Virus record (IMG/VR): IMGVR_UViG_3300042892_005961
Location: 1 to 64,000 of that record
DNA length: 64,000 nt
Strand: one strand, 5' to 3'
Shown here: positions 1-52,306 of the stretch, one piece after another
How positions within the stretch are numbered: position 1 is the first letter of the stretch
Layout: every line of letters starts with the position of its first letter
Notes under the pieces: generated by a model
Database searches by the model: none
Seen by the model: the letters and a program-made list of their open reading frames with translations, nothing else
What the model was told of the DNA's origin: nothing
Made by a program: the position numbers and the translations under genes

Positions 1-177
1 TTAATGACCGATTAAATACTGACCTACGATTTCATCACCCTTTAATTCGGTTTTAATAAGATATCTCTCCATCTCTGAGATATGTTTTAACTTACGTTCA
101 GCCTGTTCAAGTGATTCACACTCAACGACTTCATTACCAATCTCAATGTGGTACTTAACTTTTATTTTTACTTTCAT
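1..177 (-). CDS. hypothetical protein (MKVKIKVK...)
   Basis: ORF 1..192; ATG at 177 preferred because it lies 4 nt downstream of a Bacteroidota-type promoter. Confidence 0.6.
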   Translation of the reverse strand: MKVKIKVKYHIEIGNEVVECESLEQAERKLKHISEMERYLIKTELKGDEIVGQYLIGH

Positions 178-181
178 GGGA

Positions 182-213
182 CAAATATACAACCCCTATT
201 TGGAATATCCAAA
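182..213 (-). promoter_or_regulatory. Bacteroidota-type sigma70 promoter (TTTG-N20-TATATTTG)
   Basis: Minus strand reads TTTG gatattccaaataggggttg TATATTTG tccc ATG; matches -33 TTTG / -7 TAnnTTTG. Confidence 0.7.
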
Positions 214-215
214 TT

Positions 216-1061
216 TTATTTAGATTTTGGAGTGACGTCTACCTCTGTGTATGTTTCATCAGGGGACACCGAATTAGGACTAAAAATGGAGTATTTTGGA
301 ACTTGTCCTCCCCAATATACGGTTATACCATGTTTCTTAAATTGATCCGTAATTTTACTTGAAACTATATGTTTATCACCGTTTCTCAATGGTTTATCAT
401 TGGTTTTGGTATAATTTATGGTTTCAGTATTTAATAATAATATAGGATAAGTGTCGGCACCGGTAAGTTCAGTTTCTTCTTTATTACGATGTTTAATTTT
501 TACATAAAATTTATTGGGTAGTGTCCAATGTACTTCATGATATGGACTATCAACAGGACTGAACCCTATTTTTCCTCCTTTTTTTAATCCCTTATAAATA
601 AGTTTAGTCTTATTGATTAATTTTTGATCCTCTTCTTTACTTTCATTAACCAAACTTTTCTTTCCTTTTCCGTCTGATTGTCGCATATAACGGAGTTCAA
701 TGTTAAAACTAGCAAACTTATCTTCAATTTTGTTCTCAATTTCCGAAACTAACCAAAGAGGTAATTTTTCTGTTATTTCACTACCGTCTTCATTAAGAAT
801 ATCTATATCATCATAATAACAATCCATTACACAGATAACTTCTCCATTGGTATAGTCAACAATTGATCTAAAGTGTGCGTTGTGTATTTCATATTGAAAT
901 ATAATGTCGGGAACCGTCCCATCTTCATCATACCGACCAACCACAACCTTAACCTTACCTTTTTTAAAAGTTTTGAAGATTAAGTTGCCTCTTTTTCGTT
1001 GGCGTTCTTGTTCTTTCTTAAGGTCTTCACTACTTAATTTAATTGTTGTTAATCCACTCAT
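216..1061 (-). CDS. hypothetical protein, putative late gene
   Basis: 281-aa ORF; TATTTAT motif 5 nt upstream of ATG. Confidence 0.65.
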   Translation of the reverse strand: MSGLTTIKLSSEDLKKEQERQRKRGNLIFKTFKKGKVKVVVGRYDEDGTVPDIIFQYEIHNAHFRSIVDYTNGEVICVMDCYYDDIDILNEDGSEITEKLPLWLVSEIENKIEDKFASFNIELRYMRQSDGKGKKSLVNESKEEDQKLINKTKLIYKGLKKGGKIGFSPVDSPYHEVHWTLPNKFYVKIKHRNKEETELTGADTYPILLLNTETINYTKTNDKPLRNGDKHIVSSKITDQFKKHGITVYWGGQVPKYSIFSPNSVSPDETYTEVDVTPKSK

Positions 1062-17469: not shown

Positions 17470-20295
17470 TTAGGAAATCTTTTTATTTTTTGGATTTCTT
17501 AAATCTTTAAAAGCCACATCAATTAAAAAATTACCATTCTCGTCTTTAGTTTCTTTCAAATATTTCCACAAAGTGCTTTCTTTTCTACAACAATCTTGTT
17601 TACCTTTGAATTTTTTTGCCATTTTTAATGCTGATTTTGGTGTGTATAATTTTCTATTTGGGTTTCTAAGTTGTCTTTCTTGAAATGTGATAATTGGAAA
17701 TTTACATTCAGTATAAAGTATTTTCATTGCATTTGCATTTTTCCAAGCACTTGGGACGGCTCGTAAATCTTGTGCTTCTTTATAAACTCTTTCCCCATTC
17801 TCATCGACTTTTAACGCTTCCGCCAATATATTCTTTTTAATTGTCCAATATCCTTTTTGTTTTCGCTGAGTTGGTAGATAGATTTGTAACTCATCAATTA
17901 GTCCAAACTTCTCAAAGAAATTATAAATTCTTAATCCTTCAGGTTTTGTTCTTTGTAAATCACTTATGATATTATATTTTCTTTTACCGTTTTCATCCGT
18001 AGACAGTATAGTTTTTATGTATTCTTTTTTTATTTTTTCACTAAATGTAATTTTTTGTGTGGTATCGGGAAAAAAATCTAATATTTTGTTATTTTTTCTT
18101 AACCAAGACCCTAATCCAGACCCCATTTTGAAATTGCTCAAATCTGATATTGTATTTGGTTTATGTTTTTCAATAAAAAACTTTGCTAAATCATCATTCC
18201 AATCTATTTTTTCTAATTGAATTTCATATTTTTTAATAAGTACGTCAATAATTTTATTTCTTTCCGCGTATGATAATGCCTTTGGTTGTTCGTGTTGAAT
18301 TTGTCTTCTATATTTACCTTTATATTGTGAAAATATCTCATCACAATACTTAACATTCATTTCTTTTGATTTTACTTTACAATCAACATTACCAAGTATT
18401 CTGGATTTAAATAAACTATACACCTCTTCTAAATAGAATCTTTGCATAGGTTCTACAGTTGTATCTCTATCTTCAGATATTTCTATTAATTTTTTCTTAG
18501 GTGAACCAATTACTTCTTCATTATTATCAATAATTGTGTCTCCATCGGCAACTTGGTATGGGTTTACATCTTCTCTAAAAAAATTCGCAACCGTTAATAG
18601 AGGAGGTATTTTTTTTGCGTTAGGGTTAGTAACAATATAAATTATTGATTTTTTACCTTCATATCCAATTCTAACGGCTCTTAAAGAACCTTGAGCTCCT
18701 CTTCTAACACTTTTAGAACCATATCCAAAAATCAATGCGTCCGTATTCAATGTGTCCATACCCCTAGTTAACCAAGGACTACCAACAACTATTGCGAATT
18801 TATCATTGTCATATTTTTTTAAGGTTGATTCATCACCGTTTAATGCCAAATAAGGTGTATATTTTTTAGGTATGTATTTCTTTTCAATTAATAGTTTTAA
18901 TAATTCGTAAAATTTTTCACAATCATTAATCATACTGATAATTAACATACAATGTGTCTTTTTATCTTCTTTAATTGATTTTATTAAAGTAACAATAGAA
19001 CGTATAATATTACCTCTTGTTAATTTTGGAATATCTTTATATACTACATCAATAATTCCATTATCGTTTATTAAATCAAACAATGGATGTTGATCACTAA
19101 CTTCAGTTATTTTAAATTCATACGGACAATTGACACCTTCGTTAACTGCTTGGTGTGGTGTAACTATCACACAAATTTTTCCAAAATATTTTTCATCATC
19201 ATTATATATTATTGATTTATTTTTATCTTTATTATTTCTTAATGATAATGTTGCAGTAAAACTAACCAAATAATCTGTTATTGAATTTACAACGGCGTCA
19301 TTAGTATCATTACCTATGTGTCCCGTCATTGAATCCATTTCATCAATAAAACCAATAGTTTTTTTATTATAAGATAATTTATTCTTAATTTTATTGAACA
19401 TCTTTCTAAATGGTTTAGCGCTTTTATTAACAACATAAAAATTAACTTCTTCTCCATTTAACATATAAAGTTCAATAATGTGTTCTAAACTTTTATTAGA
19501 CGCCGATTTATTATCAATATTATATTCCTTTTGATTTTTAATGTATGTTCCATCAGAAGAAATAACAATTCTTTTTACTAATCCTTCTCTGTAAGTTCCC
19601 TCATCATATTGAGCGTGTTTAATAGCCATTTGTTTAGCTAACGATATATTTGGGTGATAAAAAACTTTAATTTTAATATTTTTACAAATACTCCATTCAA
19701 AATTAAAATATTGTAATAATGTTTTTCCGTAACCACCAACAATGTTATTGTAAACCTTATTATATTTTTTAAGAAAATTACCAATTTTTTTTAATACTTC
19801 ATTTTGACTTCCTCTTTTTTTAACTGTATCAGTTTTAACATTTTGATTTTTATTTAAAAATAATAAAGCATATTCAAAAGCATTGTTCCATTCCTCAATT
19901 AATATTTTCTTCCATCCATTTATTGGTAATCTGACAAACTCAGTCCCGACATCTTTAGTTTTAAGTATTTTTCTTAATTGGTAATTTTTTTCATACATAC
20001 TATCCTTAAAAAACATATCCATTTTTAATACAGTTGAATTCGCATCTTCTAAAGATGTACCTTTAGGAAGGTATTTTTTTTCTTCCCATAATGATTCTTG
20101 TATATAACCTTTACCTCTTGTTAAAACCGATTCTTTCATTACATCATCCACCGATGACTTTGTAATTCCCGTTTTAAAATCAAAACTACCGGTTTGTTTT
20201 TTATCGGGTACGACGTGGCACCAAGCATAAGTTATAGTATAATATTGTTTTAATTTTTGATCAAACCCTAGTCCATCAACCATATTATTTTTCAT
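17470..20295 (-). CDS. superfamily 2 helicase-like protein with basic C-terminal extension
   Basis: GYGKT (motif I), IDEMD (II), FTAT (III), LTRGMD (V), QGSLRAVR (VI). Confidence 0.75.
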   Translation of the reverse strand: MKNNMVDGLGFDQKLKQYYTITYAWCHVVPDKKQTGSFDFKTGITKSSVDDVMKESVLTRGKGYIQESLWEEKKYLPKGTSLEDANSTVLKMDMFFKDSMYEKNYQLRKILKTKDVGTEFVRLPINGWKKILIEEWNNAFEYALLFLNKNQNVKTDTVKKRGSQNEVLKKIGNFLKKYNKVYNNIVGGYGKTLLQYFNFEWSICKNIKIKVFYHPNISLAKQMAIKHAQYDEGTYREGLVKRIVISSDGTYIKNQKEYNIDNKSASNKSLEHIIELYMLNGEEVNFYVVNKSAKPFRKMFNKIKNKLSYNKKTIGFIDEMDSMTGHIGNDTNDAVVNSITDYLVSFTATLSLRNNKDKNKSIIYNDDEKYFGKICVIVTPHQAVNEGVNCPYEFKITEVSDQHPLFDLINDNGIIDVVYKDIPKLTRGNIIRSIVTLIKSIKEDKKTHCMLIISMINDCEKFYELLKLLIEKKYIPKKYTPYLALNGDESTLKKYDNDKFAIVVGSPWLTRGMDTLNTDALIFGYGSKSVRRGAQGSLRAVRIGYEGKKSIIYIVTNPNAKKIPPLLTVANFFREDVNPYQVADGDTIIDNNEEVIGSPKKKLIEISEDRDTTVEPMQRFYLEEVYSLFKSRILGNVDCKVKSKEMNVKYCDEIFSQYKGKYRRQIQHEQPKALSYAERNKIIDVLIKKYEIQLEKIDWNDDLAKFFIEKHKPNTISDLSNFKMGSGLGSWLRKNNKILDFFPDTTQKITFSEKIKKEYIKTILSTDENGKRKYNIISDLQRTKPEGLRIYNFFEKFGLIDELQIYLPTQRKQKGYWTIKKNILAEALKVDENGERVYKEAQDLRAVPSAWKNANAMKILYTECKFPIITFQERQLRNPNRKLYTPKSALKMAKKFKGKQDCCRKESTLWKYLKETKDENGNFLIDVAFKDLRNPKNKKIS

Positions 20296-23572: not shown

Positions 23573-24034
23573 TTAATTAAACCAACTTGGGATGTCTCTA
23601 TTCTTCCAAGTACAGAACAGTCTTTTCTCCCCCATATAATAATCTCTATATGATTGAATGGTATTCACTCCTTTGTACTCGTCTGGCATGGCCATAGGAG
23701 GTGGTGTAAATTTAACATCAGGGATTTTAGGGTGATTATCACAACACCACAGGATCACATCATAGGACTTATGTGTCTTCCCATATCTATGGGTATATTC
23801 ATAACAAAGGTGGATACCAAGTTCACATAACCATATGTAATTATGGAGATCTTGTCTAACCCATTTTGCTGATGGATGATTAACGTGGGATAATTTATAT
23901 TGTGCCTGACCTCCCGTTGCCCAATGAGATCCACAAAGTAATTGGGCAGTTTCTAATATCATTTTAACAACGTGTTTATCGTTATGATATTGTGCACATT
24001 TTGTTGGGGACTTATCTAAATAAAATATATTCAT
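23573..24034 (-). CDS. pyrimidine-dimer DNA glycosylase / endonuclease V-like protein
   Basis: MNIFYLD...HNDKHVVKMILETAQLL, HVNHP, EYTHRYGKTH, AMPDEYK, YRDYY. Confidence 0.8.
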   Translation of the reverse strand: MNIFYLDKSPTKCAQYHNDKHVVKMILETAQLLCGSHWATGGQAQYKLSHVNHPSAKWVRQDLHNYIWLCELGIHLCYEYTHRYGKTHKSYDVILWCCDNHPKIPDVKFTPPPMAMPDEYKGVNTIQSYRDYYMGEKRLFCTWKNRDIPSWFN

Positions 24035-24420
24035 TATACATTCATTTTCAATACACACTCTAAATGATCGGTATTAACTAAGTAGTCATATTCAATCTCA
24101 GACGTATCTCTACCACAATAACTACAAGTCATTTGTGGTTCAGGTGTTTCTCCTGTGATCTCCCAACATTTTTGTCTAACCTTTGCACCGAGTTCTTGGT
24201 CGTTAGATGTGTTTAGGATGTCTTCGGCCGAAATAGTAATAAGGGTTGTTCTGTTTCTCATAGTCCTACTTACATAATCATCAGATGGTCCATAGGTTCT
24301 GTCGTAACATTGTTTACAACATTGACCAGCTCCTTCAACATAACCATATCTTAAATCGATATGTGTGTTTACATCAATCGTAGTTTGCTTTCCGCAGATA
24401 ATACAAATTTCATTTGGCAT
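24034..24420 (-). CDS. zinc-finger hypothetical protein
   Basis: CIIC, CKQC, CSYC, HLEC. Confidence 0.6.
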   Translation of the reverse strand: MPNEICIICGKQTTIDVNTHIDLRYGYVEGAGQCCKQCYDRTYGPSDDYVSRTMRNRTTLITISAEDILNTSNDQELGAKVRQKCWEITGETPEPQMTCSYCGRDTSEIEYDYLVNTDHLECVLKMNV

Positions 24421-24474
24421 AAAAAAAAGTTTAGATTATAAATTTAAACTTCTTTTTTGATATAACGAAATATT

Positions 24475-25875
24475 TTAAGAATTTGTTCCTAAATTTTTAG
24501 CAATTTTATTTACTTGTCTTGCGATTGATCCAACCACCTTTTCGTAGTTAGGAGCCCCCGCGTATCTTAAATTTTTTTGGTTAACAAAATTGTTAATTAG
24601 GTCTTGTGCGGTTCTACCTTTACCTATATAATCTTTTGCTATAAGATTATAATATGCATCAATACCCGATTGTGTTGAACTATGGTTTATCGTACCTCCA
24701 TCATCTGTGTTTCCAACGTTAAATGGATTTTTTGTTTTTATTGGTAGACTATTTGCATCGGGGTTTCCAATACCTCCTTCAGCTGCCAATTGTCCTAAAG
24801 CCAATTCAGGTGGGATATATTTGTTACGTTTCTCAAATGTTCTTTTAGCACTTGATGCCATCATATCTCCCGTGATATTCAATAAGTTAGGGGTTCTTGA
24901 TTTTATGAATACATCACATATTTCACTATACATCTTATAACCTTCTTCCGTTGTTAAATCTAAATCAGTAAAGACATCGCTTCCTCCTGTTGTAACCTTA
25001 TCTATTAATTGACTTAATTGTTCTTTAGTTACACCCTTTAATTCTAATTTAGATGCCATTGATTGAGCCATCTCAGGTGTAACCGATTCCACTGGACTTT
25101 TATTGGTGTCCGAGTTACTCATAGTGACTGACTCTCCACCACCTATTTCGGTTGATACCCAATTAAATAATTCTTCCATTTTACCCGCATCACCACTAAC
25201 ATCTAAACCTTCACCTACCTTTTTACCATTAACAGTTTGACTAAATGTATTATAATGATGACTATTACCCACATGTACGGGGTTAACTTTAGATGTGTAA
25301 GGATTCTCACCAGCGTGTAAACCTAATTCTAATGCCTTTTCCATTACTTTAACAGCAACTTGAGCATCCGTAAACCCAAAATGGATATGTGTATCGTGAT
25401 TTGACCATTTAATACCGTCTACTTTATTACCAGCATCAATACCCCATGGCATCTTATTCCACACCATTTCATCAATACCTGATATAAAACCTTCACTTAT
25501 AATATTATTATCTGTCTTATATTTTTTAACCGCATCCGCAGTCTCGGGACCAAACAACCCATCAACACCATGTCTTGGTAATTCATACCCTAATAGGACT
25601 AATCCAATTTGAATTGTTTCCACTTCTTTTTGATGTTGCATTGAACCTAACTTCTGTTGGGTAACCGGTTCTTTGATTGATTTAAGATCGGTAAGGAATT
25701 TTCTAACATCATCATCTACAAAATCCGCCTTTGACGGAACGTCTATTGGTTTAATGGCATTCGTGTCTCCTCCTTGAATTAACTTAGTTAGTAAGTCGTC
25801 CTCCAACAATACTTTCTTACCATAAGTGATACTGTGTATTCTTTCCAGTTCTTCTTTTAAGGTTCTTTTCTTCAT
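24475..25875 (-). CDS. putative virion-associated peptidoglycan hydrolase (PG-binding + His-rich + glucosaminidase/lysozyme-like domains)
   Basis: GVDGLFGPETADAVKKYK (PG_binding_1); ELALGQLAAEGG, NPFNVG, RYAGAPNYE. Confidence 0.7.
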   Translation of the reverse strand: MKKRTLKEELERIHSITYGKKVLLEDDLLTKLIQGGDTNAIKPIDVPSKADFVDDDVRKFLTDLKSIKEPVTQQKLGSMQHQKEVETIQIGLVLLGYELPRHGVDGLFGPETADAVKKYKTDNNIISEGFISGIDEMVWNKMPWGIDAGNKVDGIKWSNHDTHIHFGFTDAQVAVKVMEKALELGLHAGENPYTSKVNPVHVGNSHHYNTFSQTVNGKKVGEGLDVSGDAGKMEELFNWVSTEIGGGESVTMSNSDTNKSPVESVTPEMAQSMASKLELKGVTKEQLSQLIDKVTTGGSDVFTDLDLTTEEGYKMYSEICDVFIKSRTPNLLNITGDMMASSAKRTFEKRNKYIPPELALGQLAAEGGIGNPDANSLPIKTKNPFNVGNTDDGGTINHSSTQSGIDAYYNLIAKDYIGKGRTAQDLINNFVNQKNLRYAGAPNYEKVVGSIARQVNKIAKNLGTNS

Positions 25876-26137: not shown

Positions 26138-26860
26138 TTAAAATAAAGTTTTAATTGTTTTTGTTAAATCAAACCTATCATATATTGTGTTGTATTTTTC
26201 AATAAAATTGTCATTCATCTTTAAATTACCGGTAAAATGTTTACTTGAATTTATTTTTTCTAATTTAAAATTAATATTAAGTTTATTAGACACCCATTCT
26301 TCAAGTTCGTATAATTTATCGATATCAAACCAAATAATTTTTTTATGATGTTGGTGCCACGTTGAACATGGTAGAAATAATACTGATAACATATTTGCCA
26401 GTCGGCCTTCATACTCAATAAGTTTATGTTTTATAATAAAGTGGGACACATATTCTTGATGGGTATCACGCAATACATCAGATGGTGTGATATCAAAAAA
26501 TATATCATTTTCATCCATTTTAATTAATTTATTATAATTTTCTACCAAGCCTGTTCTATTTTCCTCATCAATAATATGATACCATAATGATAAAAATCGT
26601 TCGTATCTATTACGTTTAACCGAAATTACTTCATAATTATTTCCGAATTTAGATTCTAAATAATCTAATGGTTCGTGCATATGATAGAATGTATCTGCAA
26701 TTATTTCATTATCAAGTGTTATATCAATATTATTATATTCAATTTGATGTTCATTCATTAAAGTTTTTACATTTAATTTATTTTTAGCACAGGAAATAGC
26801 AAATGATGTGGATGCACATCTGGGTAAACTAATGTATATGAATTTGTTTTCTACTAACAC
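26138..26860 (-). CDS. sulfotransferase family 2-like protein
   Basis: FIYISLPRCASTS (5'-PSB), RNRYERFLSLW (3'-PB); ends KTIKTLF. Confidence 0.7.
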   Translation of the reverse strand: MLVENKFIYISLPRCASTSFAISCAKNKLNVKTLMNEHQIEYNNIDITLDNEIIADTFYHMHEPLDYLESKFGNNYEVISVKRNRYERFLSLWYHIIDEENRTGLVENYNKLIKMDENDIFFDITPSDVLRDTHQEYVSHFIIKHKLIEYEGRLANMLSVLFLPCSTWHQHHKKIIWFDIDKLYELEEWVSNKLNINFKLEKINSSKHFTGNLKMNDNFIEKYNTIYDRFDLTKTIKTLF

Positions 26861-26875
26861 AATAATAATTTTAAA

Positions 26876-27145
26876 TTAAAATAAAGTTTTGGTAGTCTTT
26901 GTGGGTGGAAAATATAGACTATCCACCGATTCCCATTTTTTTAATGGACAATCATTAAATGTTGCACTAAATATTTTTTTGGAAAGTGGACATCCACATT
27001 CATTGCATTTATAATACGATAAAATAGTTTTAACTTTGGATGGACATGTATTGCATATATCATGTCTTTTTTCAGCCAATTCTAATTGTTTATCAGTTGG
27101 GTTTGCGGATGCAATCCAAGCTTTTGCAATTTTTAAAAAATCCAT
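26876..27145 (-). CDS. small Cys-rich (DUF6171-like) metal-binding protein
   Basis: RxxICxxCP...CNECGCPL..K...CPLKKW; ends KTTKTLF. Confidence 0.7.
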   Translation of the reverse strand: MDFLKIAKAWIASANPTDKQLELAEKRHDICNTCPSKVKTILSYYKCNECGCPLSKKIFSATFNDCPLKKWESVDSLYFPPTKTTKTLF

Positions 27146-27165: not shown

Positions 27166-27243
27166 TTAAGAATTTGCAGTGATAATTAATGCACCAATTT
27201 GTGTCATTGTACTATCTATTGTTTGCTTTTCTATTAATGTCAT
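27166..27243 (-). CDS. 25-aa micro-ORF (MTLIEKQTIDSTMTQIGALIITANS)
   Basis: Hand-translated ORF filling the gap between the Hint gene and the Cys protein. Confidence 0.45.
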   Translation of the reverse strand: MTLIEKQTIDSTMTQIGALIITANS

Positions 27244-27266
27244 TTTATATTATTTTAAATTTTTTA

Positions 27267-28793
27267 TTAGAACCATCCGTAACATGCAGGACAAAAAGTA
27301 TTTTCTACTCTACATAGTCCATTACCATCGGTATAACAACAGATGTAACCTTTATTACAAGATGCCTGTGCACACGCTGGTCCGCCGGTACAATCTTGTG
27401 CATTGTGTTCAATTGAAACATATGTTTTATTTGCATCAACATCCGATTTAGTTAAGAATAAGTGAGCGTTTTCAACACTAATTTCAAATCCACCAAAAAA
27501 TTGATGAAGTTGTTCTATGTTTGAAATTTCTTTAGTTACGAATGATGGTGTCGTTGGATTTGTTGTATCTAATAATAAAATACTATCTCCAATTATCATT
27601 TTGTATTCACTAGTTACAACATCACCCAATATCAAAAATCTAACTTCGTTGTTTCTAATTGATAGATAAGATGATCCCGTATTATCATACCAATCACTAC
27701 CATCTGCAAATGTTAATTTAATAACATTAGTATAGGTATTTACTCTTTTTAGTGCCGTAATCGCATTTGTGCTATATGTGGTTCCAGTTTGTAATTCGGA
27801 TAACGATATCCTATAATTGGTTGTATCATTTAAATTATCCGCATCGAATGGATTTGGTACATCAATTGTTTTAATAATATCACCAACCACCAATTCAGTT
27901 GCAAGTTTGGTACTACCATCTGCCATTTCCACTAAATCCGTATCTAATAATTTTGGTAACCTCATTTGATAATCACCACTAATGTATTTATTTCTATCTT
28001 GTGTTAATTCAAATGTTGTAACATCAAATATAGAATCTGTTTCTACTGAGTTATCACACACTCTTGTATAACCACCCAATGATATTGACTCTAAATTAGG
28101 AGGGAATAATAAATTTAAACCTCTAAATACTTTTATATGATTTTCAAATAATTGTGTTGCATTAAAATAAAATTCCATTAAAAAATAATCATCCGTAACT
28201 ACATTTGAAATAAGTGTATTAAGCTCTTCTTGTGTTGTTACTTTGTAAAATTTAGGATATACTTCTCTGTCGTATTGTGGTAATCTATCTTTTAATATAA
28301 AATTAGGATGTCCACCATTATCATTGATGGTTGTTATATTATTAACTAAATTATTGTTTTCATCCATATACGCAAATTGAGAACCAAATGACGACTCTTT
28401 AATTAAATTTAAAAAATTAATTTTATCTTTACAATATGTATCGTCCACTAACGCTGTCGTATCGTAAGCACTTCTAATGATTAATGTTTGGTCGGTGTCT
28501 TCAACAGATGGTATAGTTATTGCATTTGATGCGACGATGTGGTCTTCAAATTCAATTCCTAATGTTTGACATGAAGATGATAAATTATTTTTAAAAACCG
28601 TCATTCCACCTATATAAATAACTTTAGTAAACCCGTTTTCAGTTATAAATGAATTAAGTGTTGTTAAATCGATACAATCAATATCATCTTCGATTTTATT
28701 ACGATGCCAACCAACTGCGGTATTGATTTCAATTGGTACTAAATTACCAATTTTATTGTACATAAAGTCCGATCCAATTAAGACTGTTCTCAT
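27267..28793 (-). CDS. circularly permuted ATP-grasp-like + Hint domain + C-terminal Cys-rich peptide
   Basis: N-terminal GSDF..GNLVPIEINT precedes FILK and LMEFY; Hint block A LVEMADGSTKLATELVVGD; Hint end HLFL...IEHN; then 44 aa with 8 Cys. Confidence 0.7.
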   Translation of the reverse strand: MRTVLIGSDFMYNKIGNLVPIEINTAVGWHRNKIEDDIDCIDLTTLNSFITENGFTKVIYIGGMTVFKNNLSSSCQTLGIEFEDHIVASNAITIPSVEDTDQTLIIRSAYDTTALVDDTYCKDKINFLNLIKESSFGSQFAYMDENNNLVNNITTINDNGGHPNFILKDRLPQYDREVYPKFYKVTTQEELNTLISNVVTDDYFLMEFYFNATQLFENHIKVFRGLNLLFPPNLESISLGGYTRVCDNSVETDSIFDVTTFELTQDRNKYISGDYQMRLPKLLDTDLVEMADGSTKLATELVVGDIIKTIDVPNPFDADNLNDTTNYRISLSELQTGTTYSTNAITALKRVNTYTNVIKLTFADGSDWYDNTGSSYLSIRNNEVRFLILGDVVTSEYKMIIGDSILLLDTTNPTTPSFVTKEISNIEQLHQFFGGFEISVENAHLFLTKSDVDANKTYVSIEHNAQDCTGGPACAQASCNKGYICCYTDGNGLCRVENTFCPACYGWF

Positions 28794-30727: not shown

Positions 30728-31069
30728 TTAGAGAGCAAAACTTTCTCCACATCCACAAGTCCGACTTGCTTGGGGGTTAACCCAATTGAATCCTTTTCCG
30801 TTTAATCCATCGGAATAATCTAATTCGGTTCCATATAGATATAGAACTGATTTTTTATCTATAATCACTTTCAAGACCTTTAAATCAACAACTTCATCCA
30901 TATCTGTTATTGTATCATCAAAATCCATGGCGTAAGATAATCCACTACAACCACCTCCCTTAACCCCAACACGAAGAAAGTGGGTATCTGGTGTTATTCC
31001 TTTTTCCGTCATTAATTCAACAACATGATTAAGTGCTTTCTCTGATATTGTAACCATCTTAATGTTCAA
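30728..31069 (-). CDS. iscA: A-type Fe-S carrier (IscA/HesB)
   Basis: LRVGVKGGGCSGLSY, NPQASRTCGCGESF. Confidence 0.93.
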   Translation of the reverse strand: MNIKMVTISEKALNHVVELMTEKGITPDTHFLRVGVKGGGCSGLSYAMDFDDTITDMDEVVDLKVLKVIIDKKSVLYLYGTELDYSDGLNGKGFNWVNPQASRTCGCGESFAL

Positions 31070-31460
31070 ATACTAATACATCCATACCATTCTTAACACG
31101 GTAATCGTTTATTGCAGATTTGATGGCGTCCTCCGCCAAAACTGAACAGTGAATCTTAACTGGTGGTAGGTTTAATTCTTCCACTAAATCCATATTATCA
31201 ATTGTCAATGCCTCATCAACGCTCTTTCCTTTTAACCATTCAGTTGCAACGGATGATGATGCAATTGCTGAACCACATCCAAAGGTTTTAAATTTTGCGT
31301 CGATAATGATGTTATCCACAACTTCAATTTGTAATCTCATCACATCACCACACTCAGGTGCACCAACCAAACCAGTTCCTACGTTTGATTTGGACTTATC
31401 TAATGTTCCCACATTTTGTGGGTTGGAGTAATGATTCAATACTTTATCTGAATATGCCAT
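31059..31460 (-). CDS. iscU: Fe-S scaffold protein IscU
   Basis: GAPECGDVMRLQI, FKTFGCGSAIASSS, LPPVKIHCSVLAEDAI. Confidence 0.95.
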   Translation of the reverse strand: MAYSDKVLNHYSNPQNVGTLDKSKSNVGTGLVGAPECGDVMRLQIEVVDNIIIDAKFKTFGCGSAIASSSVATEWLKGKSVDEALTIDNMDLVEELNLPPVKIHCSVLAEDAIKSAINDYRVKNGMDVLVFEH

Positions 31461-40352: not shown

Positions 40353-40550
40353 ATGAAAGTAGAAAAAAAATTAACGAGTGTCCATGTATTGGAAGACGTT
40401 TACAGAAAATTTAAAATAAATGCAATTGATGGTAATATTAATTTACAAAAGTTAGTTAATCGTACGTTAGATCTTTATGTTAAAGATGATGTGTTTAGAA
40501 ATAAAATAAATAACTACACAGATTTATCTGTGAGTGGATCAAAATATTAA
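40353..40550 (+). CDS. RHH-like small regulator
   Basis: KLTSVHV strand plus NLQKLVNRTLDLY helix; heads the glycosylation operon; TATATTTG just upstream. Confidence 0.6.
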   Translation: MKVEKKLTSVHVLEDVYRKFKINAIDGNINLQKLVNRTLDLYVKDDVFRNKINNYTDLSVSGSKY

Positions 40551-40551
40551 T

Positions 40552-41913
40552 ATGGGTAAACCAAGAATATTATTACTATCAGATGATTTACGAATGACAT
40601 CAGGTATTTCCACAATGTCTAGAGAATTTGTAATGGGTACTTTGGATAGATTTAATTGGGTTCAATTGGGTGCTGGAATTAATCATCATGAAGCTGGTAA
40701 ATTTGTTGACGTTAACGAAGATGCTAGACAAAAGACAGGAGTTAAAGATGCTGAATTAAAAATTATACCATATAATTCATATGGTGATATTGTAATGTTA
40801 AGAAAGATATTATCAGAAATGAAAATAGATGCTATCTTACATTTTACTGATCCCCATTATTGGCAATGGTTATATGACTCCGAACATGAAATAAGACAAC
40901 AAGTCCCAATTTTATATTATCATATATGGGACAATTTACCTGACCCAATGTATAATAAAGATTACTACGAAAGTTGTGATTGGTTAGGATGTATCTCTAA
41001 ATTAACATATGGTATTGTTAATCGTGTTGGTAAAATGGAAGATGAGTTTCGTAAACCATTACAAGATTGGCAAATTAGTTATGTTCCTCATGGAATAAAT
41101 CCAGATACATTTAAACCATTAGAAGATAAAGAATTGATTGATGTTAAAAAGGGTTTATTCGGTGATAAAGAATATGACTTTGTTTTATTTTTTAACAGTA
41201 GAAATATTCGTAGAAAACAACCTTCAGATGTTATTGAATCATTTAAATTATTTTGTGATAAGTTAACCAAAGAACAATCAGACAAATGTGTTTTAGTTAT
41301 GCATACAACTCCGATTGATAACAATGGTACAGATTTATATGCGGTTAGAGATAAAATATGTCCTAATTATGATGTGGTCTTCTCAACCAATAAAATAGAA
41401 AGTGATATTTTAAATAAATTATATAATATCGCCGATTGTACAATTAACATTGCAAATAATGAAGGATTTGGTTTAGGTACCGCCGAAAGTATTATGGCTG
41501 GCACACCCATCATTGTAAGTGTAACAGGTGGTTTACAAGATCAATGTGGTTTTAATTACACTGCAGATGATTACATCAATATTAAAACTTTACACAATAA
41601 ACAAATTCATAAAGATACACCTCACGGTGTGTGGGCTAAACCGATATGGCCTTCCGCAATTAACATTAATGGTTCTCCATTAACACCTTACATTTATGAT
41701 GATAGAGTTAATGATGAAGAAGTTGCTGATGCTATTACTGAAATGTATTTGTTAGGTAAAGAAAAAAGAAAAGAGAATGGTCAAGTGGGAAGAGAGTGGG
41801 CAATCAATAACTTATCGTCAAAAGTTATGTGTGATGCTATGAGTGAAGGAATACAAAAAACAATAAAGAATTTTACACCACGTGAAAGATTTAATTTATA
41901 TAAAGTAGTTTAA
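40552..41913 (+). CDS. GT4 (GT-B) glycosyltransferase
   Basis: VPHGIN, RNIRRKQ, NEGFGLGTAESIMAGTPII. Confidence 0.88.
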   Translation: MGKPRILLLSDDLRMTSGISTMSREFVMGTLDRFNWVQLGAGINHHEAGKFVDVNEDARQKTGVKDAELKIIPYNSYGDIVMLRKILSEMKIDAILHFTDPHYWQWLYDSEHEIRQQVPILYYHIWDNLPDPMYNKDYYESCDWLGCISKLTYGIVNRVGKMEDEFRKPLQDWQISYVPHGINPDTFKPLEDKELIDVKKGLFGDKEYDFVLFFNSRNIRRKQPSDVIESFKLFCDKLTKEQSDKCVLVMHTTPIDNNGTDLYAVRDKICPNYDVVFSTNKIESDILNKLYNIADCTINIANNEGFGLGTAESIMAGTPIIVSVTGGLQDQCGFNYTADDYINIKTLHNKQIHKDTPHGVWAKPIWPSAININGSPLTPYIYDDRVNDEEVADAITEMYLLGKEKRKENGQVGREWAINNLSSKVMCDAMSEGIQKTIKNFTPRERFNLYKVV

Positions 41914-43175
41914 TGAAACCAACAATATTATTTAGAGGACCAGTTAAAACAAGAAGTGGTTATGGTTCACACTCAAGAGATTTATTAGAGGCACTATATC
42001 AAATGAATATATTTGATATTAAAATTGATAGTTGTATGTGGGGGAATACTCCCATGACTGCTTTGGAACCGGATAATACATTTCATAAATGGATTGAAAG
42101 TAATATCGTTTATAAATTTGACGGTCTACCTGATATCTATATACAAGTAACGGTACCTAATGAATTTAAAAGATTTGGTAAATTTAATATAGGTATCACC
42201 GCAGGAATTGAAACAACTGTTGCACCTAAAGATTGGATTGATGGTTGTAATCAAATGGATTTAATAATTACAACATCTAATTTTTCTAAAGATGTTTTAT
42301 TATCTACAGTTTATGATGAAAGAAATAAAACAACAAATGAATTAACTAATCAACATAAGATAACAAAACCAATTGAAGTGTTATTTGAAGGTGTTGATAC
42401 ATCAATCTTTAATGATGTAATCAATAAAGATTTTAAATTAGATATTAAAGAAAACTTCGCATTTTTATTTGTTGGTCATTGGTTAAAGGGAAACATAGGT
42501 CAAGACAGGAAAGACATTGGTATGTTGATTAAATGTTTTGTTGAGGCATTTAAGGATGGTAATGATATGCCGGCGTTGGTATTAAAAACATCATCATCAA
42601 GTTTTTCAATTAAAGAAAGAGAAGTTTTTACTAAAAGAATAAAAGATATTGTTTCTGATATTAAAAATCCTCCGTCAATTTATTTATTATTTGGTGATTT
42701 AAGTAATAAAGAAATGAATGATCTATATAACCATCCAAAAATTAAACTAATGGTTTCACTAACTAAAGGTGAGGGATTTGGTAGACCTTTATTAGAATTT
42801 ACAATGACTGGTAAACCTGTAATGGCTTCCAATTGGTCGGGTCATAAAGATTTTTTATCTGTTGATAAATCAATTATGATTGGTGGTAAATTAACAGATG
42901 TTGACGATAGTGCAATTGATCAGTTTATTATTAAAGGATCTAAATGGTTTACCGCAAATTATGGTGAAGTTGCTGAAATTATGAAAATAGCTAGAAACGA
43001 TTATAGTAATTTCTTACTAAAATCTTTAAAACTTAAAGAAGAGAATAAACAAAACTTTTCTTTAGAAAAAATGAAAGAACGTTTTGAGGAGATATTAAAA
43101 CCATATTCAATTGCGTTTCAACCTCCTCCACAACAAACCAAATTAATTTTACCTAAATTAAATAAAGTTAAATAA
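41913..43175 (+). CDS. GT4 (GT-B) glycosyltransferase
   Basis: SGYGSHSR, DRKDI, GEGFGRPLLEF, WSGHKDF. Confidence 0.88.
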   Translation: MKPTILFRGPVKTRSGYGSHSRDLLEALYQMNIFDIKIDSCMWGNTPMTALEPDNTFHKWIESNIVYKFDGLPDIYIQVTVPNEFKRFGKFNIGITAGIETTVAPKDWIDGCNQMDLIITTSNFSKDVLLSTVYDERNKTTNELTNQHKITKPIEVLFEGVDTSIFNDVINKDFKLDIKENFAFLFVGHWLKGNIGQDRKDIGMLIKCFVEAFKDGNDMPALVLKTSSSSFSIKEREVFTKRIKDIVSDIKNPPSIYLLFGDLSNKEMNDLYNHPKIKLMVSLTKGEGFGRPLLEFTMTGKPVMASNWSGHKDFLSVDKSIMIGGKLTDVDDSAIDQFIIKGSKWFTANYGEVAEIMKIARNDYSNFLLKSLKLKEENKQNFSLEKMKERFEEILKPYSIAFQPPPQQTKLILPKLNKVK

Positions 43176-43405
43176 TGAACTTCAAATTTTTTAAAGGTGA
43201 TGAAACACCTACATTATGTTTTACACCTCATAGATATGAACCAGAAAATGCTGAATTTTGTTTTCAATTTGGTGATGAAGAACCCGTTGTTTTCGCTTCG
43301 GGTCCAAATGATTGTAGTATTCGTTTAAGTCCAACGAGTAATACTGAAATGACGTTTAATGATAATGGTAGAGTATTTAAATTATTCGCAAGAGAAAGAC
43401 AATAA
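43175..43405 (+). CDS. hypothetical protein, N-terminal FKFF motif
   Basis: Starts MNFKFFKG. Confidence 0.65.
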   Translation: MNFKFFKGDETPTLCFTPHRYEPENAEFCFQFGDEEPVVFASGPNDCSIRLSPTSNTEMTFNDNGRVFKLFARERQ

Positions 43406-43406
43406 T

Positions 43407-43649
43407 ATGGGAGTTAGAGAGTTTAGATTTTTTCACGGGATCACAATTCAATCGGAAGGTATTCAAAATATCGTTAGAACACTACGTGCTCAATGGAGAC
43501 CTGAGTTGGTTGATGATTTAAATACTGTTTACTCAATTGATGCTGAGGCAGAATTAACAAGATTAATGTCGGAACAAATTGTGGAAGAAATTGACAACGA
43601 AGTAATAAATATATTAACGGGAAGAATAAACGGAGGACAAAGAGCATAA
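43407..43649 (+). CDS. FRFF-motif miniprotein containing a T4-like major capsid protein fragment
   Basis: MGVREFRFFHG then RTLRAQWRPELVDDLNTVYSIDAEAELTRLMSEQIVEEIDNEVI, recognisably gp23-like. Confidence 0.7.
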   Translation: MGVREFRFFHGITIQSEGIQNIVRTLRAQWRPELVDDLNTVYSIDAEAELTRLMSEQIVEEIDNEVINILTGRINGGQRA

Positions 43650-43650
43650 T

Positions 43651-44271
43651 ATGAAAATAAGTTTTGCAATTACAGTTTGTAATGAATTAGAGGAAATAAA
43701 AAAATTGGTTTCATTTTTATTTAAACATAAAAGAAAGGAAGACGAGATTGTTATTCTCTATGATGAGAAGAACGGCAATCCCGAAATATTAGATTTCTTA
43801 TTACCATATAATAAATTCCCTCACGTTCAAACGTGGAGAGGGTTTGATTTTGAAAGTAACTTTGCAGATTGGAAAAATAAATTAAATGACTACTGTCAGG
43901 GAGATTATATCTATCAAATAGATGCCGATGAAATGGTTAGTGAATATATAGTTAAAAATCTTAATCAAATATTAGAATTAAATCCAAAGGTTGATTTAAT
44001 ATTTGTTCCTCGTATTAATACAGTTAATGGTATAACACAAGAACACATTAATAAATGGGGTTGGAATGTTAATGAAAAAGGATGGGTAAACTTTCCCGAT
44101 GCTCAAGGACGAATATATCGTAAAGGTATGAGTTGGTATGGTAAGGTTCACGAACGAATAATAGGTGGTCAAAAATTTTCATCATTACCTTTAGATGAAG
44201 AATATTGTATACAACACCATAAGACGATTGATCGTCAAGAAAAACAAAACAATTACTATAGTTCATTATGA
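43651..44271 (+). CDS. GT2 glycosyltransferase
   Basis: ISFAITVCNE, NFADWKN, QIDADE, VHE. Confidence 0.88.
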   Translation: MKISFAITVCNELEEIKKLVSFLFKHKRKEDEIVILYDEKNGNPEILDFLLPYNKFPHVQTWRGFDFESNFADWKNKLNDYCQGDYIYQIDADEMVSEYIVKNLNQILELNPKVDLIFVPRINTVNGITQEHINKWGWNVNEKGWVNFPDAQGRIYRKGMSWYGKVHERIIGGQKFSSLPLDEEYCIQHHKTIDRQEKQNNYYSSL

Positions 44272-44882
44272 GTTATCAATACCCAAAACATTTTAAGTAC
44301 CCAGAAGGAGAACGTTATTTCTTTTTAAATCATGTAGATTCATGGAAACATTTCTTACCTAACTATGGTGATGAACCAAGAGTGTGTTTAGAGATAGGTG
44401 CATTGTATGGTGGATCTTCAGTTTATATTTTAGATGAATTCTGTAAAAAAGAAGGTTCACATCATTATATAATGGATATCAATACAAATGAATTTATTGA
44501 AAATAATATTAAACCATATAAAGATAAGGTAACATATATTTTAGGTGAATCGGCCGATAGTTTTAAAACATTTAACCATAATGGTGAAACTAAAGAGTTT
44601 TTAGACTTTGTTTACATAGATGGTAATCATATGTGTAAATATGTTTTAGAAGATGCTGTAAATGCATTTTACTGTTTGAAAGATTATGGTTATATTATCT
44701 TTGATGATTACGGTGGAGGACTTGAACAAGATCAATATTTACAAGTTAAAACTGGTGCTGACGCGTTTTATCATGGATATCACAAATATTTAGAAATAGT
44801 GTATAACGGTTATCAAGTCATTATGAAAAAAATAAATTATATAAATGAAAATGATTTAAAAGAAAATTATTATAAAGTATGA
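44268..44882 (+). CDS. class I SAM methyltransferase (Methyltransf_24-like)
   Basis: LEIGALYGGS, DFVYIDGNH, IIFDDY. Confidence 0.85.
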   Translation: MSYQYPKHFKYPEGERYFFLNHVDSWKHFLPNYGDEPRVCLEIGALYGGSSVYILDEFCKKEGSHHYIMDINTNEFIENNIKPYKDKVTYILGESADSFKTFNHNGETKEFLDFVYIDGNHMCKYVLEDAVNAFYCLKDYGYIIFDDYGGGLEQDQYLQVKTGADAFYHGYHKYLEIVYNGYQVIMKKINYINENDLKENYYKV

Positions 44883-45874
44883 AAATATTAATTACAGGAG
44901 TTGCGGGATTGTTAGGTTCAAGATTATCGGATTACATTATTGAAAATCATTCAGATGTTTATATCGTTGGTATTGATGATATGAGTGGTGGATATAGGGA
45001 GAATGTTAATCCAAAGGTTGAGTTATGGGAAATGAATTTAGTTAATGGTAATATTAGTGAATGTTTTGAAAGACATCAATTTGATTATGTTTACCATTTC
45101 GCAGCATATGCCGCTGAGGGATTATCCCCATTCATTAGAACATATAACTATCAAAACAATTTAGTTGCAACGTCGCGCATTATTACACAATGTATTAAAC
45201 ACAATATTAAAAGATTAGTATTCACGTCTACATTGGCGGTATATGGTCACCAGGATGGTAATATATTTGACGAAATTCAAGTACCTAAGCCTATTGACCC
45301 GTACGGTGTTGCTAAATATGGTTGTGAAATGGATATACAGATTGCTGGTGAGCAACATGGACTTGATTGGTGTATTATTAGACCACACAACGTTTACGGT
45401 GTTAAACAGAACGTATGGGACAAATATAGAAACGTATTAGGTATATGGATGTATCAACATACAATCAACGAACCTATGACAATATTTGGTGACGGTACAC
45501 AAACAAGAGCTTTCAGTTATATTGATGACAGTCTTGAACCATTATGGAAAGCATCTCAAGATATTAGAGCATCAAAAGAAATAATTAACTTAGGTGGTGT
45601 TAAAGAATACTCAATAAACGAAGCTAATGAAATTTTACGTGAAGTAGTTGGTGGAGGTGAGGTAAAATATTTTGAAGGTAGACATGAAGTGAAACACTCA
45701 ATACCTACTTGGCAAAAATCAATTGACTTATTAGACTTTGAACATAAAACAGATTTGAAGGAAGGTTTAACTAAAATGTGGGAGTGGGTTAAAAGTCAAC
45801 CAGTTAGAGAGAGGTTCGTGTGGCCGTTCTACGAATTAGATAAAGGAATTTATTCATTTTGGAAAACAAAGTAA
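44879..45874 (+). CDS. NAD-dependent nucleotide-sugar epimerase/dehydratase
   Basis: ITGVAGLLG, YGVAK, RPHNVYG, GDGTQTRAFSYIDD. Confidence 0.92.
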   Translation: MKILITGVAGLLGSRLSDYIIENHSDVYIVGIDDMSGGYRENVNPKVELWEMNLVNGNISECFERHQFDYVYHFAAYAAEGLSPFIRTYNYQNNLVATSRIITQCIKHNIKRLVFTSTLAVYGHQDGNIFDEIQVPKPIDPYGVAKYGCEMDIQIAGEQHGLDWCIIRPHNVYGVKQNVWDKYRNVLGIWMYQHTINEPMTIFGDGTQTRAFSYIDDSLEPLWKASQDIRASKEIINLGGVKEYSINEANEILREVVGGGEVKYFEGRHEVKHSIPTWQKSIDLLDFEHKTDLKEGLTKMWEWVKSQPVRERFVWPFYELDKGIYSFWKTK

Positions 45875-45875
45875 T

Positions 45876-46898
45876 ATGAAAAAAGTATTAGTATTAGGTG
45901 CTGGTGGATTCATCGGTTCACATTTAGTAAAAAAATTAAAAGAACAAGGATGTTGGGTTAGAGGAGTTGATTTAAAATATCCTGAATATGAAACAAGTGT
46001 TGCAGATGATTTTGTTATTCGTGATTTAAGAGACCCAAGAAATGTTGAGTCTGTGATTAAATTAGAGTCATATAATAATCATCCTTTACCATATAAGTTT
46101 GACCTTTATCCATTCTCAGATAAATTACAATTTGATGAAGTGTATCAATTAGCTGCCGATATGGGTGGAGCTGGTTATATTTTTAGTGGTGATAATGATG
46201 CAAATGTGATGCACAATTCTGCAATGATTAATTTAAATGTTGCATATGAATGTTCAAGACAGGAAGTTAAAAAAGTATTTTATTCTTCTTCCGCTTGTAT
46301 GTATCCAGAACATAATCAATTAGATCCAACTAATCCAAATTGTGAAGAATCTTCAGCCTATCCAGCAAATCCAGATTCAGAATATGGATGGGAAAAATTA
46401 TTTAGTGAAAGAATGTTTTTAGCTTTTCATAGAAATTATAATTTAGATATTAGAATTGCTAGATTTCATAACATATTTGGACCATATGGAACATATAAAG
46501 ATGGAAAAGAAAAGGCACCTGCAGCTATATGTAGAAAAGTTGCTGAGTGTTTAGATGGTGGTGAAATTGAAGTATGGGGAGATGGTGAACAAACTCGTTC
46601 TTTTTTATACATCGATGAATGTATTGAAGGAGTATTAAAATTAATGGAATCAGATTTTATTGGTCCAGTAAATATTGGTAGTGATGAAATGGTAACCATA
46701 AATGATATGGTAAATAGTGTAATCGACATTAGTGGTAAAACGGTACATGTTAAACATGTCGACGGTCCAACTGGTGTTAGAGGTAGAAATAGTGACAATA
46801 CTTTAATTAAAGAAAAATTAAATTGGTCACCAAAACAACCTTTATATGATGGACTAATAAAAACATTTAATTGGATAAACAAAGAAATTATTAAATGA
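45876..46898 (+). CDS. GDP-mannose 3,5-epimerase-like extended SDR
   Basis: GAGGFIG, QLAADMGGAG, YSSSACMYP, YGWEK, KEKAPAAICRK, GVRGRNSDN. Confidence 0.88.
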   Translation: MKKVLVLGAGGFIGSHLVKKLKEQGCWVRGVDLKYPEYETSVADDFVIRDLRDPRNVESVIKLESYNNHPLPYKFDLYPFSDKLQFDEVYQLAADMGGAGYIFSGDNDANVMHNSAMINLNVAYECSRQEVKKVFYSSSACMYPEHNQLDPTNPNCEESSAYPANPDSEYGWEKLFSERMFLAFHRNYNLDIRIARFHNIFGPYGTYKDGKEKAPAAICRKVAECLDGGEIEVWGDGEQTRSFLYIDECIEGVLKLMESDFIGPVNIGSDEMVTINDMVNSVIDISGKTVHVKHVDGPTGVRGRNSDNTLIKEKLNWSPKQPLYDGLIKTFNWINKEIIK

Positions 46899-47470: not shown

Positions 47471-47473
47471 ATT

Positions 47474-49791: not shown

Positions 49792-49792
49792 T

Positions 49793-51968: not shown

Positions 51969-52005
51969 ACATTATAATATAATAAAAAAAGGTGAAAATG
52001 TAAAA

Positions 52006-52224: not shown

Positions 52225-52257
52225 GATATATTTCTTTTAACTAAGTTCTTTGTTATA

Positions 52258-52294: not shown

Positions 52295-52306
52295 CATTTA
52301 ATGTAA

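Follow-up and report, generated by a model that had tools for sequence, protein, structure and literature searches.

We analysed a window of 64,000 nucleotides, the first 64 kb of the 211-kb IMG/VR virus record IMGVR_UViG_3300042892_005961, which is estimated to be 63% complete. The window has a GC content of ~30%. On its minus strand, an open reading frame (ORF) at 27267-28793, with its ATG at 28793 and its stop at 27267-27269, encodes a 508-aa protein composed of a predicted ATP-grasp ligase domain, a degenerate Hint domain and a short Cys-rich tail. An original prediction had proposed that this protein is a permuted ligase joined to a Hint domain that cleaves on its C-terminal side and releases an 8-Cys peptide. 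The coordinates, strand, length and motifs that it quoted were all present, as was the 8-Cys tail at residues 465-508. Judged from the sequences, the three-part layout goes far beyond chance: more than 700 homologues share it, the His-Asn (HN) pair at the end of the Hint domain is invariant, and the tail is hypervariable except for its Cys framework. The features of the locus are listed below.

27954-28793, minus strand: permuted ATP-grasp-like amide ligase domain, residues 1-280 (predicted fold and conserved residues)
28722-28769, minus strand: D9...E22-x-N24 motif at the extreme N-terminus, a putative Mg/ATP-binding triad
28290-28292, minus strand: Lys168 of the FILK motif, candidate ATP-phosphate-binding lysine (role taken from ATP-grasp enzymology)
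27402-27953, minus strand: degenerate Hint domain (Hint-A), residues 281-464, in which only the C-terminal cleavage residues are kept
27402-27407, minus strand: His463-Asn464, predicted Asn-cyclisation site (cleavage expected from intein/BIL chemistry)
27270-27401, minus strand: hypervariable 8-Cys tail, residues 465-508, the predicted released product
27351-27353, minus strand: Lys481 (C-N-K), the obligatory tail lysine
26876-27145, minus strand: gene for an 89-aa Zn-ribbon-like partner with weak DUF6171 similarity
26138-26860, minus strand: gene for a 240-aa sulfotransferase-like protein (tentative assignment)

When residues 1-279 were folded alone, AF2 gave a model with a confidence (pLDDT) of 90. 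The top 16 VIA matches of this model in the PDB were all ATP-grasp enzymes. The permuted ones were aligned from residue 1: YgiC (Z 8.9), GSS-like (8.1), GspS (8.1), glutathione synthetases (7-8), 3k1t (7.8), Cp1B (7.4), 3n6x (7.0) and trypanothione synthetase (6.8). In contrast, the alignments with the classical ATP-grasp enzymes ArgX, LysX, RimK, TTLL and DdlA started only at about residue 55. This difference matches what is predicted if permutation has brought the Mg-binding E-x-N strand to the very start of the chain, and it agrees with the permuted order that had been read for residues 1-280 from the motifs. Foldseek independently found yeast glutathione synthase (1m0t) with an E of 2.6e-6; a search of the AlphaFold Swiss-Prot models with the N-domain gave nothing informative. 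Structural superposition placed residues 1..270 of the model onto YgiC 94..371. A local hhalign alignment, itself non-significant, put query residue 3 on YgiC residue 96 and so fell in the register of the superposition (model 1 to YgiC 94); in both, D9/G16/E22/N24 were paired with D..G..E-N-N of YgiC.

Across 135 N-domains, down to 23% identity, D9, E22, N24, R107, D117, N164 and R224 were invariant, and Lys168 was kept in 134. This set can be read as a metal triad, a Lys that binds ATP and a pair of Arg, with the roles assigned presumptively. The conservation of D9, E22, N24, R107, D117, K168 and R224 argues for an active enzyme. From the predicted model, we consider it very probable that residues 1-279 adopt a circularly permuted ATP-grasp fold, and probable that the domain is an active ligase. 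By analogy, the expected chemistry would be activation of a carboxylate and formation of an amide with an amine. YgiC is named a peptide--spermidine ligase in RefSeq, and Cp1B is an ATP-grasp enzyme in the E-64 pathway (PMC12568646).

The full-length AF2 model had a pLDDT of 82 and a pTM of 0.78. The best structural match for residues 274-469 was BIL2 of Tetrahymena BUBL1 (6tmm), with a Foldseek E of 1.4e-8 and a VIA Z of 15.2. Other VIA matches to Hint domains included the NpuDnaB intein (Z 14.5), a C. thermocellum BIL (13.9) and hedgehog (13.5), over a range of Z 12-15.2, and Foldseek gave a probability of 1.00 for 40 or more inteins. As with the N-domain, the fold call rests on a predicted structure together with conserved residues. 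The catalytic residues were located by MAFFT alignment to the canonical second Hint domain (Hint-B) that some relatives carry. Lys281 occupies the position of Cys1 and is invariant, as is Pro280. The block-B T-x-x-H reads N371-T-G-S374, with Ser374 in place of the His. Both losses had been noted in the original prediction, and the alignment confirms them. On the other hand, His463-Asn464 is aligned with the terminal HN of the canonical Hint domain and is retained; it was invariant in every homologue inspected, down to ~23% identity in the ligase domain. The residue after HN had been given as Ala. This is right for the window protein (Ala465), whereas position +1 varies across the family, with 15 of 241 tails having Ser, Thr or Cys there.

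The Pfam models PF07591, PF14890 and PF01079 matched neither the window protein nor 58 close homologues; only the second Hint domain of the two-Hint relatives was matched. Type-A BILs that have HN and lack a +1 nucleophile mainly cleave (PMC4031507). By analogy, Hint-A would form no N-terminal thioester and would not splice, and a C-terminal cut by Asn cyclisation would still be feasible.

Tail statistics were calculated from 241 distinct proteins with one Hint domain. The tails were 4-84 aa long, with a median of 41. Six Cys were found in 75 tails, eight in 147 and ten in 11 (233 of the 241 together), and the Cys number was even in 239. The window tail has 44 residues, with 8 Cys and one Lys. 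Gly, Pro and Cys were enriched in the tails and His accounted for 0.3% of residues. Since the Cys count is even and His is nearly absent, we favour disulfides over classical Zn sites as the probable state of the Cys. AF2 gave no confident fold for the tail (pLDDT <50), no Pfam fold or family was matched by it, and an Atlas feature search with it returned no credible look-alike.

All 241 tails contained Lys, whereas 23% would be expected to lack it from tail composition. Exactly one Lys was present in 63% of the tails, compared with 33% expected. No residue other than Lys was obligatory in this way; Asp and Glu were both absent from 16% of tails, no fewer than by chance. The position of the Lys differs between clades. 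In the window clade it lies mid-tail after a Cys (C-P/G/S/N-K), and in distant clades it lies at or near the C-terminus (...G-x-K). Lys is the last residue in 33 of the 241 tails as a whole. The rare short tails that have no Cys keep the Lys too.

The tail changes much faster than the rest of the protein. In close pairs compared by the Nei-Gojobori method, the nonsynonymous rate (dN) of the tail was 5-100 times that of the body. The ratio omega was 0.1-0.9 for the tail in most pairs and 0.06-0.3 for the body. A hypervariable peptide behind a conserved ligase and Hint domain was thus found among the homologues, as the original prediction had anticipated. The same trend was seen in a strain variant from a lake metagenome, in which the listed differences were ~10 of 132 nt in the tail, 10 of 552 nt in the Hint domain and at most 6 of 840 nt in the ligase. 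In the closest pair (L033:6001-7500 and L037:6001-7479), the body was 99.8% identical and the tail 85.7%. Most of the tail differences formed a dense patch of about 14 substitutions in ~35 nt within one inter-Cys loop, and they included a switch of serine codons from TCC to AGT; the patch looks like micro-recombination or gene conversion and not point mutation. The synonymous rate (dS) of the tail was also elevated in very close pairs, which points to patchy recombination or gene conversion. Tail variation is best fitted by patchy recombination together with diversifying or relaxed selection. A 90-aa antisense ORF at 27179-27451 on the plus strand overlaps the tail-coding DNA; nothing supports this frame, which in DNA so rich in AT is most likely spurious.

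Some relatives carry further modules beyond the peptide. In two-Hint relatives (e.g. P0183, P0226 and P0241), a homologous Cys-rich segment follows the first HN and is itself followed by a canonical Hint domain with Cys1, TxxH and NGILVHN. This Hint-B matched Intein_splicing and PT-HINT in Pfam (PT-HINT E 4.9e-11 to 1e-13), and Lys always follows it, at +1 or a few residues on. In P0258, a canonical Hint domain comes directly after the first HN, ahead of KK and the Cys-rich tail. A different arrangement was found in P0166, P0168 and P0169, where a Cys-rich segment ending in ...G-x-K(-P) precedes a Peptidase_S74 domain scoring above the Pfam cut-off; weaker Peptidase_S74 matches were obtained for P0152, P0192 and P0196. 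Other long relatives have larger Cys-rich regions past the HN. Three autoproteolytic solutions at the boundaries of the peptide are hard to explain unless the segment is to be freed, so the presence of such modules on both sides of the peptide, as predicted from the relatives' sequences, gives independent comparative support for release. We also observed five longer proteins of 1129-1667 aa (P0224, P0229, P0231, P0244 and P0247) that have the same ligase start followed by BACON domains, P0224 with a weak PT-HINT match in addition. Their domain content suggests surface- or glycan-binding payloads in some lineages.

The family is large. A word-indexed search gave 707 clusters at 90% identity, nearly all of ~500 aa, an exhaustive profile search with the N-domain as query gave 296 clusters at 50% identity, and IMG/VR, when scanned, yielded 80 loci, the contigs being up to 335 kb long. 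The ligase is always N-terminal, and its fusion to the Hint domain and tail is kept across the 296 clusters. Family members found so far are viral only. Their Atlas neighbours are 96-100% viral and belong to Uroviricota, and 185,579 species genomes of bacteria and archaea, searched with patterns that fit the close clade only, yielded no relative. Every database copy is named "hypothetical protein". No significant match came from searches of Pfam, PHROGs and the PDB (phmmer/hmmsearch) with the whole protein, each of its three pieces or an alignment of 58 sequences; weak matches to a PHROG tail tube (E 0.008-0.017) and to Sm proteins were rejected as noise.

The source is an uncultured lake phage with relatives in Uroviricota. 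The same record encodes a T4-type gp32, in keeping with the phage origin assumed in the original prediction, and the sequence recurred in lake-water metagenomes, in 18 or more runs drawn from many studies. tblastn of the 508-aa protein against 50,697 cultured-phage records gave no match. A 941-aa helicase at 17470-20295 on the minus strand (PHROG 16, AAA) likewise gave no tblastn match at E<=1e-5 in those records, which places this lake phage lineage far from anything cultured. Metatranscriptome contigs span parts of the ligase-Hint gene, which cannot prove transcription, and a promoter and terminator scan gave nothing informative.

The gene at 26876-27145 is closely tied to the ligase-Hint gene. 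A homologue of this partner was found downstream in 80 of 82 loci. Gene order is altered in the distant relatives, and there a partner homologue lies directly upstream (hmmsearch E 1e-31 to 1e-36). The 211-kb record contains exactly two partner copies, one beside each of two ligase paralogues. The second paralogue, at 65138-66634 on the minus strand just past the window (loci L002 and L093), is 46% identical and has a 6-Cys tail. It has its own Zn-ribbon partner (64748-65008, minus strand) and a sulfotransferase-like gene downstream; upstream of it are DUF2061, a 128-aa unknown and an APS kinase. One genome thus carries the whole module twice. W10, R27, C34, C47, C50, C52, K57, C66 and W71 are invariant in the partner, with a mean column identity of 46%, and this set of residues reads as a Zn-ribbon pattern. 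DUF6171 (PF19668) matched 7 of 25 partners weakly, with a best E of 5e-4 and no match for the window copy, and is carried by 13% of the members of one Atlas neighbour cluster. The partner ends in K-x-x-K-T-hydrophobic-hydrophobic, and both of the final positions hold hydrophobic residues in 58 of 58 sequences, the background being 22%.

The sulfotransferase-like family at 26138-26860 was present in 66 of 82 loci and also in the distant locus L084. Its profile spans both PAPS-binding motifs of heparan-sulfate 2-O-sulfotransferase with an E of 0.028, and one of 22 members matched Sulfotransfer_2 (E 5.5e-5); on this basis the assignment is tentative. An APS kinase is nearby in 35 loci, and APS kinase and DUF2061 flank the loci of the paralogue type. 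Recurrent neighbours are 2-oxoglutarate (2OG)-Fe(II) oxygenases, radical-SAM/SPASM proteins and a carbamoyltransferase. Directly upstream of partner and ligase, the distant relatives (L084:1220-2446, L087:2823-4046 and flanks) have genes of the Trp-halogenase family, along with two or three 2OG-Fe(II) oxygenases and an unknown of ~205 aa, and the tails of these relatives contain conserved Trp and Tyr. Tailoring-type genes of this kind are common orphans in T4-like aquatic phages, so we treated them as context only. A conserved ORF of 39-45 aa (...RITP...VV-RIK-KH...) comes right after distant ligase-Hint genes (L084:5288-5425, L087:6527-6664, L085:2726-2845) and was not seen in the window clade. 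On the other side of the window gene, two adjoining ORFs at 30728-31460 on the minus strand resemble IscA/HesB-type and IscU/NifU-type Fe-S assembly proteins when their translations are read by eye; they are ~2-4 kb from the gene for the Cys-rich peptide.

We propose, with a probability of roughly 55%, that the protein is a self-processing peptide precursor and that the ligase fused within it acts with the partner to link the tail Lys or the new N-terminus through an amide or isopeptide bond. The precursor would be used for a single turnover. Hint-A would act as an Asn lyase that cuts only Asn464-Ala465 by Asn cyclisation, and the cut would free a peptide of 44 residues with 8 Cys, a single Lys and a new alpha-amino group. 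The next step is more speculative: the permuted ATP-grasp ligase would activate a carboxylate as an acyl-phosphate and join the peptide by an amide or isopeptide bond. The amine would be the obligatory tail Lys or the new N-terminus. For the carboxylate, we prefer the conserved free C-terminus of the partner, because a small Zn-ribbon protein with such a terminus beside an ATP-grasp ligase recalls LysW with LysX/ArgX; the peptide's own C-terminus would be the alternative. The loops would diversify fast on a fixed even-Cys scaffold, as expected of a disulfide-rich effector in phage-host or phage-phage conflict. The original prediction, which our results support in part, had missed the obligatory Lys, the conserved partner gene and the sulfotransferase-like neighbour, all of which constrain the mechanism. 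Those of its proposed checks that were run (the two folds, conservation of HN, and a variable peptide behind conserved domains) all gave the outcome it had expected. Its chemistry, namely Asn cyclisation, ligation driven by ATP, either ring closure of the peptide or its attachment to a carboxylate, and disulfides or metal at the Cys, is still what we infer and not what we observed.

Several points weigh against this proposal. Cleavage and ligase activity are both predictions. The ATP-grasp assignment comes from a predicted structure at a middling Z (7-9). No Pfam ATP-grasp model was matched, and the PF03738 (GSP_synth) HMM found nothing in the genome at E<=10. The hhalign alignment with YgiC had a Prob of 2%, which is not significant; the YgiC homologue set (>=77% identity) was too uniform for a strong profile. 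The substrate pair is a guess, and a role for the partner as chaperone, immunity factor or regulator is equally plausible. The two-Hint relatives already own a thioester route, and the role of a ligase is less evident there. Tail omega is raised and not clearly above 1, so positive selection is not established and relaxed constraint is possible. To spend one enzyme molecule on each 44-aa peptide is costly, and disulfides would not form in the reducing cytoplasm.

A wider version of the proposal can be drawn, and we hold it only tentatively. It sees a phage peptide-product system with ligase, Hint "leader protease" (the Asn lyase) and hypervariable core in one chain and with the Zn-ribbon protein as carrier or conjugation partner. 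The neighbouring sulfotransferase and APS kinase, 2OG-Fe(II) oxygenases, Trp halogenase, radical-SAM/SPASM protein and carbamoyltransferase would tailor the peptide, giving a conotoxin-like repertoire for phage-host or phage-phage conflict.

In the strongest of the rival explanations, the Hint domain only frees a payload (a toxin, an inhibitor or a receptor blocker), and the ATP-grasp domain acts on an unrelated substrate such as a host metabolite, a polyamine or a cell-wall precursor, the two being fused for co-delivery or co-regulation. PT-HINT proteins likewise have their Hint domain right ahead of a hypervariable C-terminus, and relatives do match Pfam PT-HINT; GspS/YgiC-type enzymes act on small molecules as well as on short peptides, and the orphan status of the tailoring-type neighbours suits this explanation too. 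However, the fusion with an N-terminal ligase has been kept over all 296 clusters, and the obligatory Lys with a strictly linked partner suggests that the tail itself is the substrate. The protein lacks any domain for secretion or trafficking, and the partner is conserved, unlike polymorphic immunity genes. We regard release of a payload without ligation as unlikely.

Intramolecular macrocyclisation, either head-to-tail as in cyclotides or as a lactam from Lys to the C-terminus or to Asp/Glu as in graspetides, would make use of the new alpha-amine generated by the Hint domain and of the single conserved Lys, which in some tails is the last residue. ATP-grasp enzymes make omega-amides in graspetides (PMC13418204). 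Against this, acidic residues are missing from 16% of tails, the tail termini differ greatly in length and residue, and the fold is nearer to the GspS/GSS type (Z 7-9) than to the graspetide ligase 7mgv (Z 4.7). The partner gene would also be left unexplained. We rejected a graspetide-type lactam within the tail as the universal chemistry, acidic residues being dispensable, and cyclisation in general seems to us quite improbable.

It is also conceivable that no cleavage takes place, and that a degenerate Hint domain serves as a structural module and the tail as a metal-binding domain of an intact ligase. The loss of Cys1 and TxxH, the richness of the tail in Cys, the IscU/IscA-like genes nearby and the lack of a confident AF2 fold for the tail would all suit such a protein. 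It is hard to reconcile with an HN that is invariant although every other catalytic residue of the Hint domain has decayed. In addition, a structural metal site would not be hypervariable or so poor in His, and relatives place an autoproteolytic Hint or S74 domain at the other tail boundary. We think an uncleaved protein has a slight chance of being correct.

Least credible of all is that the tail is the variable region of a diversity-generating retroelement (DGR) or a receptor-binding tip like that of a tail fibre: hypervariability limited to ~130 nt at the C-terminal end, an S74 chaperone domain (typical of phage fibres) in some relatives and the weak PHROG tail-tube match speak for it, but conserved catalytic residues in the N-terminal enzyme do not fit a fibre tip and the PHROG match is not significant, and a DGR target was rejected, as the substitution spectrum (L033/L037) is not adenine-specific, and neither a further copy of the tail DNA nor a reverse transcriptase (RVT_1) was found in the 211-kb, 63%-complete record.

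If the proposed precursor is real, it would be a natural one-gene route to a free, possibly conjugated or cyclised, disulfide-rich peptide that requires no separate protease. To our knowledge, no class of RiPP (peptide made on ribosomes and modified after translation) uses a Hint domain for leader removal, and we know of no ATP-grasp ligase fused to its own ribosomal substrate. Lake and marine viromes contain the family in abundance, with up to two copies per genome, and it is wholly unannotated, so the proposal would give a function to a sizeable part of viral dark matter. With its hypervariable loops and fixed Cys scaffold, the peptide has the mark of an arms-race molecule, which might act on a host receptor, a protease or a rival phage. 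T4-like aquatic phages carry genes for 2OG oxygenases, halogenases and sulfotransferases that have long lacked an explanation, and the peptide might be a substrate for these enzymes as well. If the chemistry holds, peptide engineering could make direct use of the module, a self-cleaving Hint domain that needs no thioester joined to a compact amide ligase of 280 aa.

Other observations were made elsewhere in the window. Just downstream of the module, 23573-25875 on the minus strand encodes a DNA glycosylase for pyrimidine dimers (Pyr_excise) as well as an endolysin-like protein of 466 aa (PG_binding_1, with a weak glucosaminidase match). A large block of glycosyltransferases (GT) and methyltransferases occupies 40534-59237 and includes a 911-aa GT-methyltransferase fusion at 56502-59237. 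Within the glycosyltransferase cluster stands a 96-aa gene at 43359-43649 on the plus strand. Its match to Gp23, the model for the major capsid protein of T4, is confined to positions 135-194 (E 2.8e-12), and it resembles a Gp23 fragment standing alone; a similar 82-aa gene was found in L003.

Finally, we compared the system with known ones. No description of a ligase-Hint-peptide combination was found in the literature searched, which is in line with the earlier statement that no equivalent had been described, and there is no Pfam model for it. Type-A BIL and PT-HINT domains are alike in having a Hint fold, a C-terminal HN, usually no +1 nucleophile and a position before a hypervariable C-terminus, and Asn cyclisation is their expected chemistry (PMC4031507). 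They differ from Hint-A, which has an invariant Lys at position 1 and no TxxH, and hence no thioester, and which has no Pfam Hint match. Here the payload is a Cys-rich peptide of 27-60 aa and not a toxin domain, and the N-terminus is an enzyme and not a secretion or trafficking module. In polymorphic toxins, the neighbouring gene is polymorphic; here the adjacent partner is conserved, and the protein begins with the first beta-strand of the enzyme.

Graspetides and microviridins resemble the system in pairing a ribosomal peptide with an ATP-grasp enzyme and in having Lys among the residues that can be cross-linked. Their precursor and enzyme are encoded by separate genes, however, and the enzyme is a classical ATP-grasp. 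They have conserved acidic and Ser/Thr/Lys cores and separate leader proteases, whereas here the acidic residues are dispensable and a Hint domain stands in place of the protease. Conotoxins, knottins and cyclotides share the even Cys framework, the hypervariable loops and the clustering of substitutions in single inter-Cys loops. They are secreted by means of signal and pro-peptides and cut by cellular proteases, and for the tail no match to a fold or family was obtained.

LysW is a small Zn-ribbon carrier, and an ATP-grasp ligase works on its conserved C-terminus. The ~90-aa partner is similar in its Zn-ribbon pattern, its conserved C-terminus and its genetic linkage to an ATP-grasp ligase, and LysX/ArgX structures bound to LysW (3vpb, 5k2m) were among our PDB matches. 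Unlike LysW, the partner ends in K-T-hydrophobic-hydrophobic and not in acidic residues; the two share no sequence similarity, and a corresponding role for the partner is presumed. GspS, YgiC, eukaryotic glutathione (GSH) synthetase and CP_ATPgrasp proteins were the best structural matches over the whole ligase domain, with the permuted order and D...E-x-N first, and GspS, YgiC and GSH synthetase couple a peptide carboxylate to an amine. The ligase domain differs from them in showing no significant sequence or profile similarity, in its size of ~280 aa with no extra domains, and in standing in cis with its presumed substrate.

In BUBL of Tetrahymena, a small segment flanked by Hint domains is passed to the epsilon-amine of a Lys, and BIL2 transfers the upstream C-terminus (PMC8616854). 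The two-Hint relatives share this flanked layout, and it is noteworthy, if the analogy holds, that a Lys invariably comes after Hint-B. BUBL works without ATP and has ubiquitin-like domains, whereas here an ATP-grasp ligase is fused and the cargo is Cys-rich; of the two flanking Hint domains, the window protein possesses just the upstream, C-cleaving one. The modules are thus known, their combination is undescribed, and the system departs from the defining features of inteins/BILs, graspetides, polymorphic toxins and DGR targets. We therefore file it as a new kind of system made from known modules, with its chemistry presumed from theirs.

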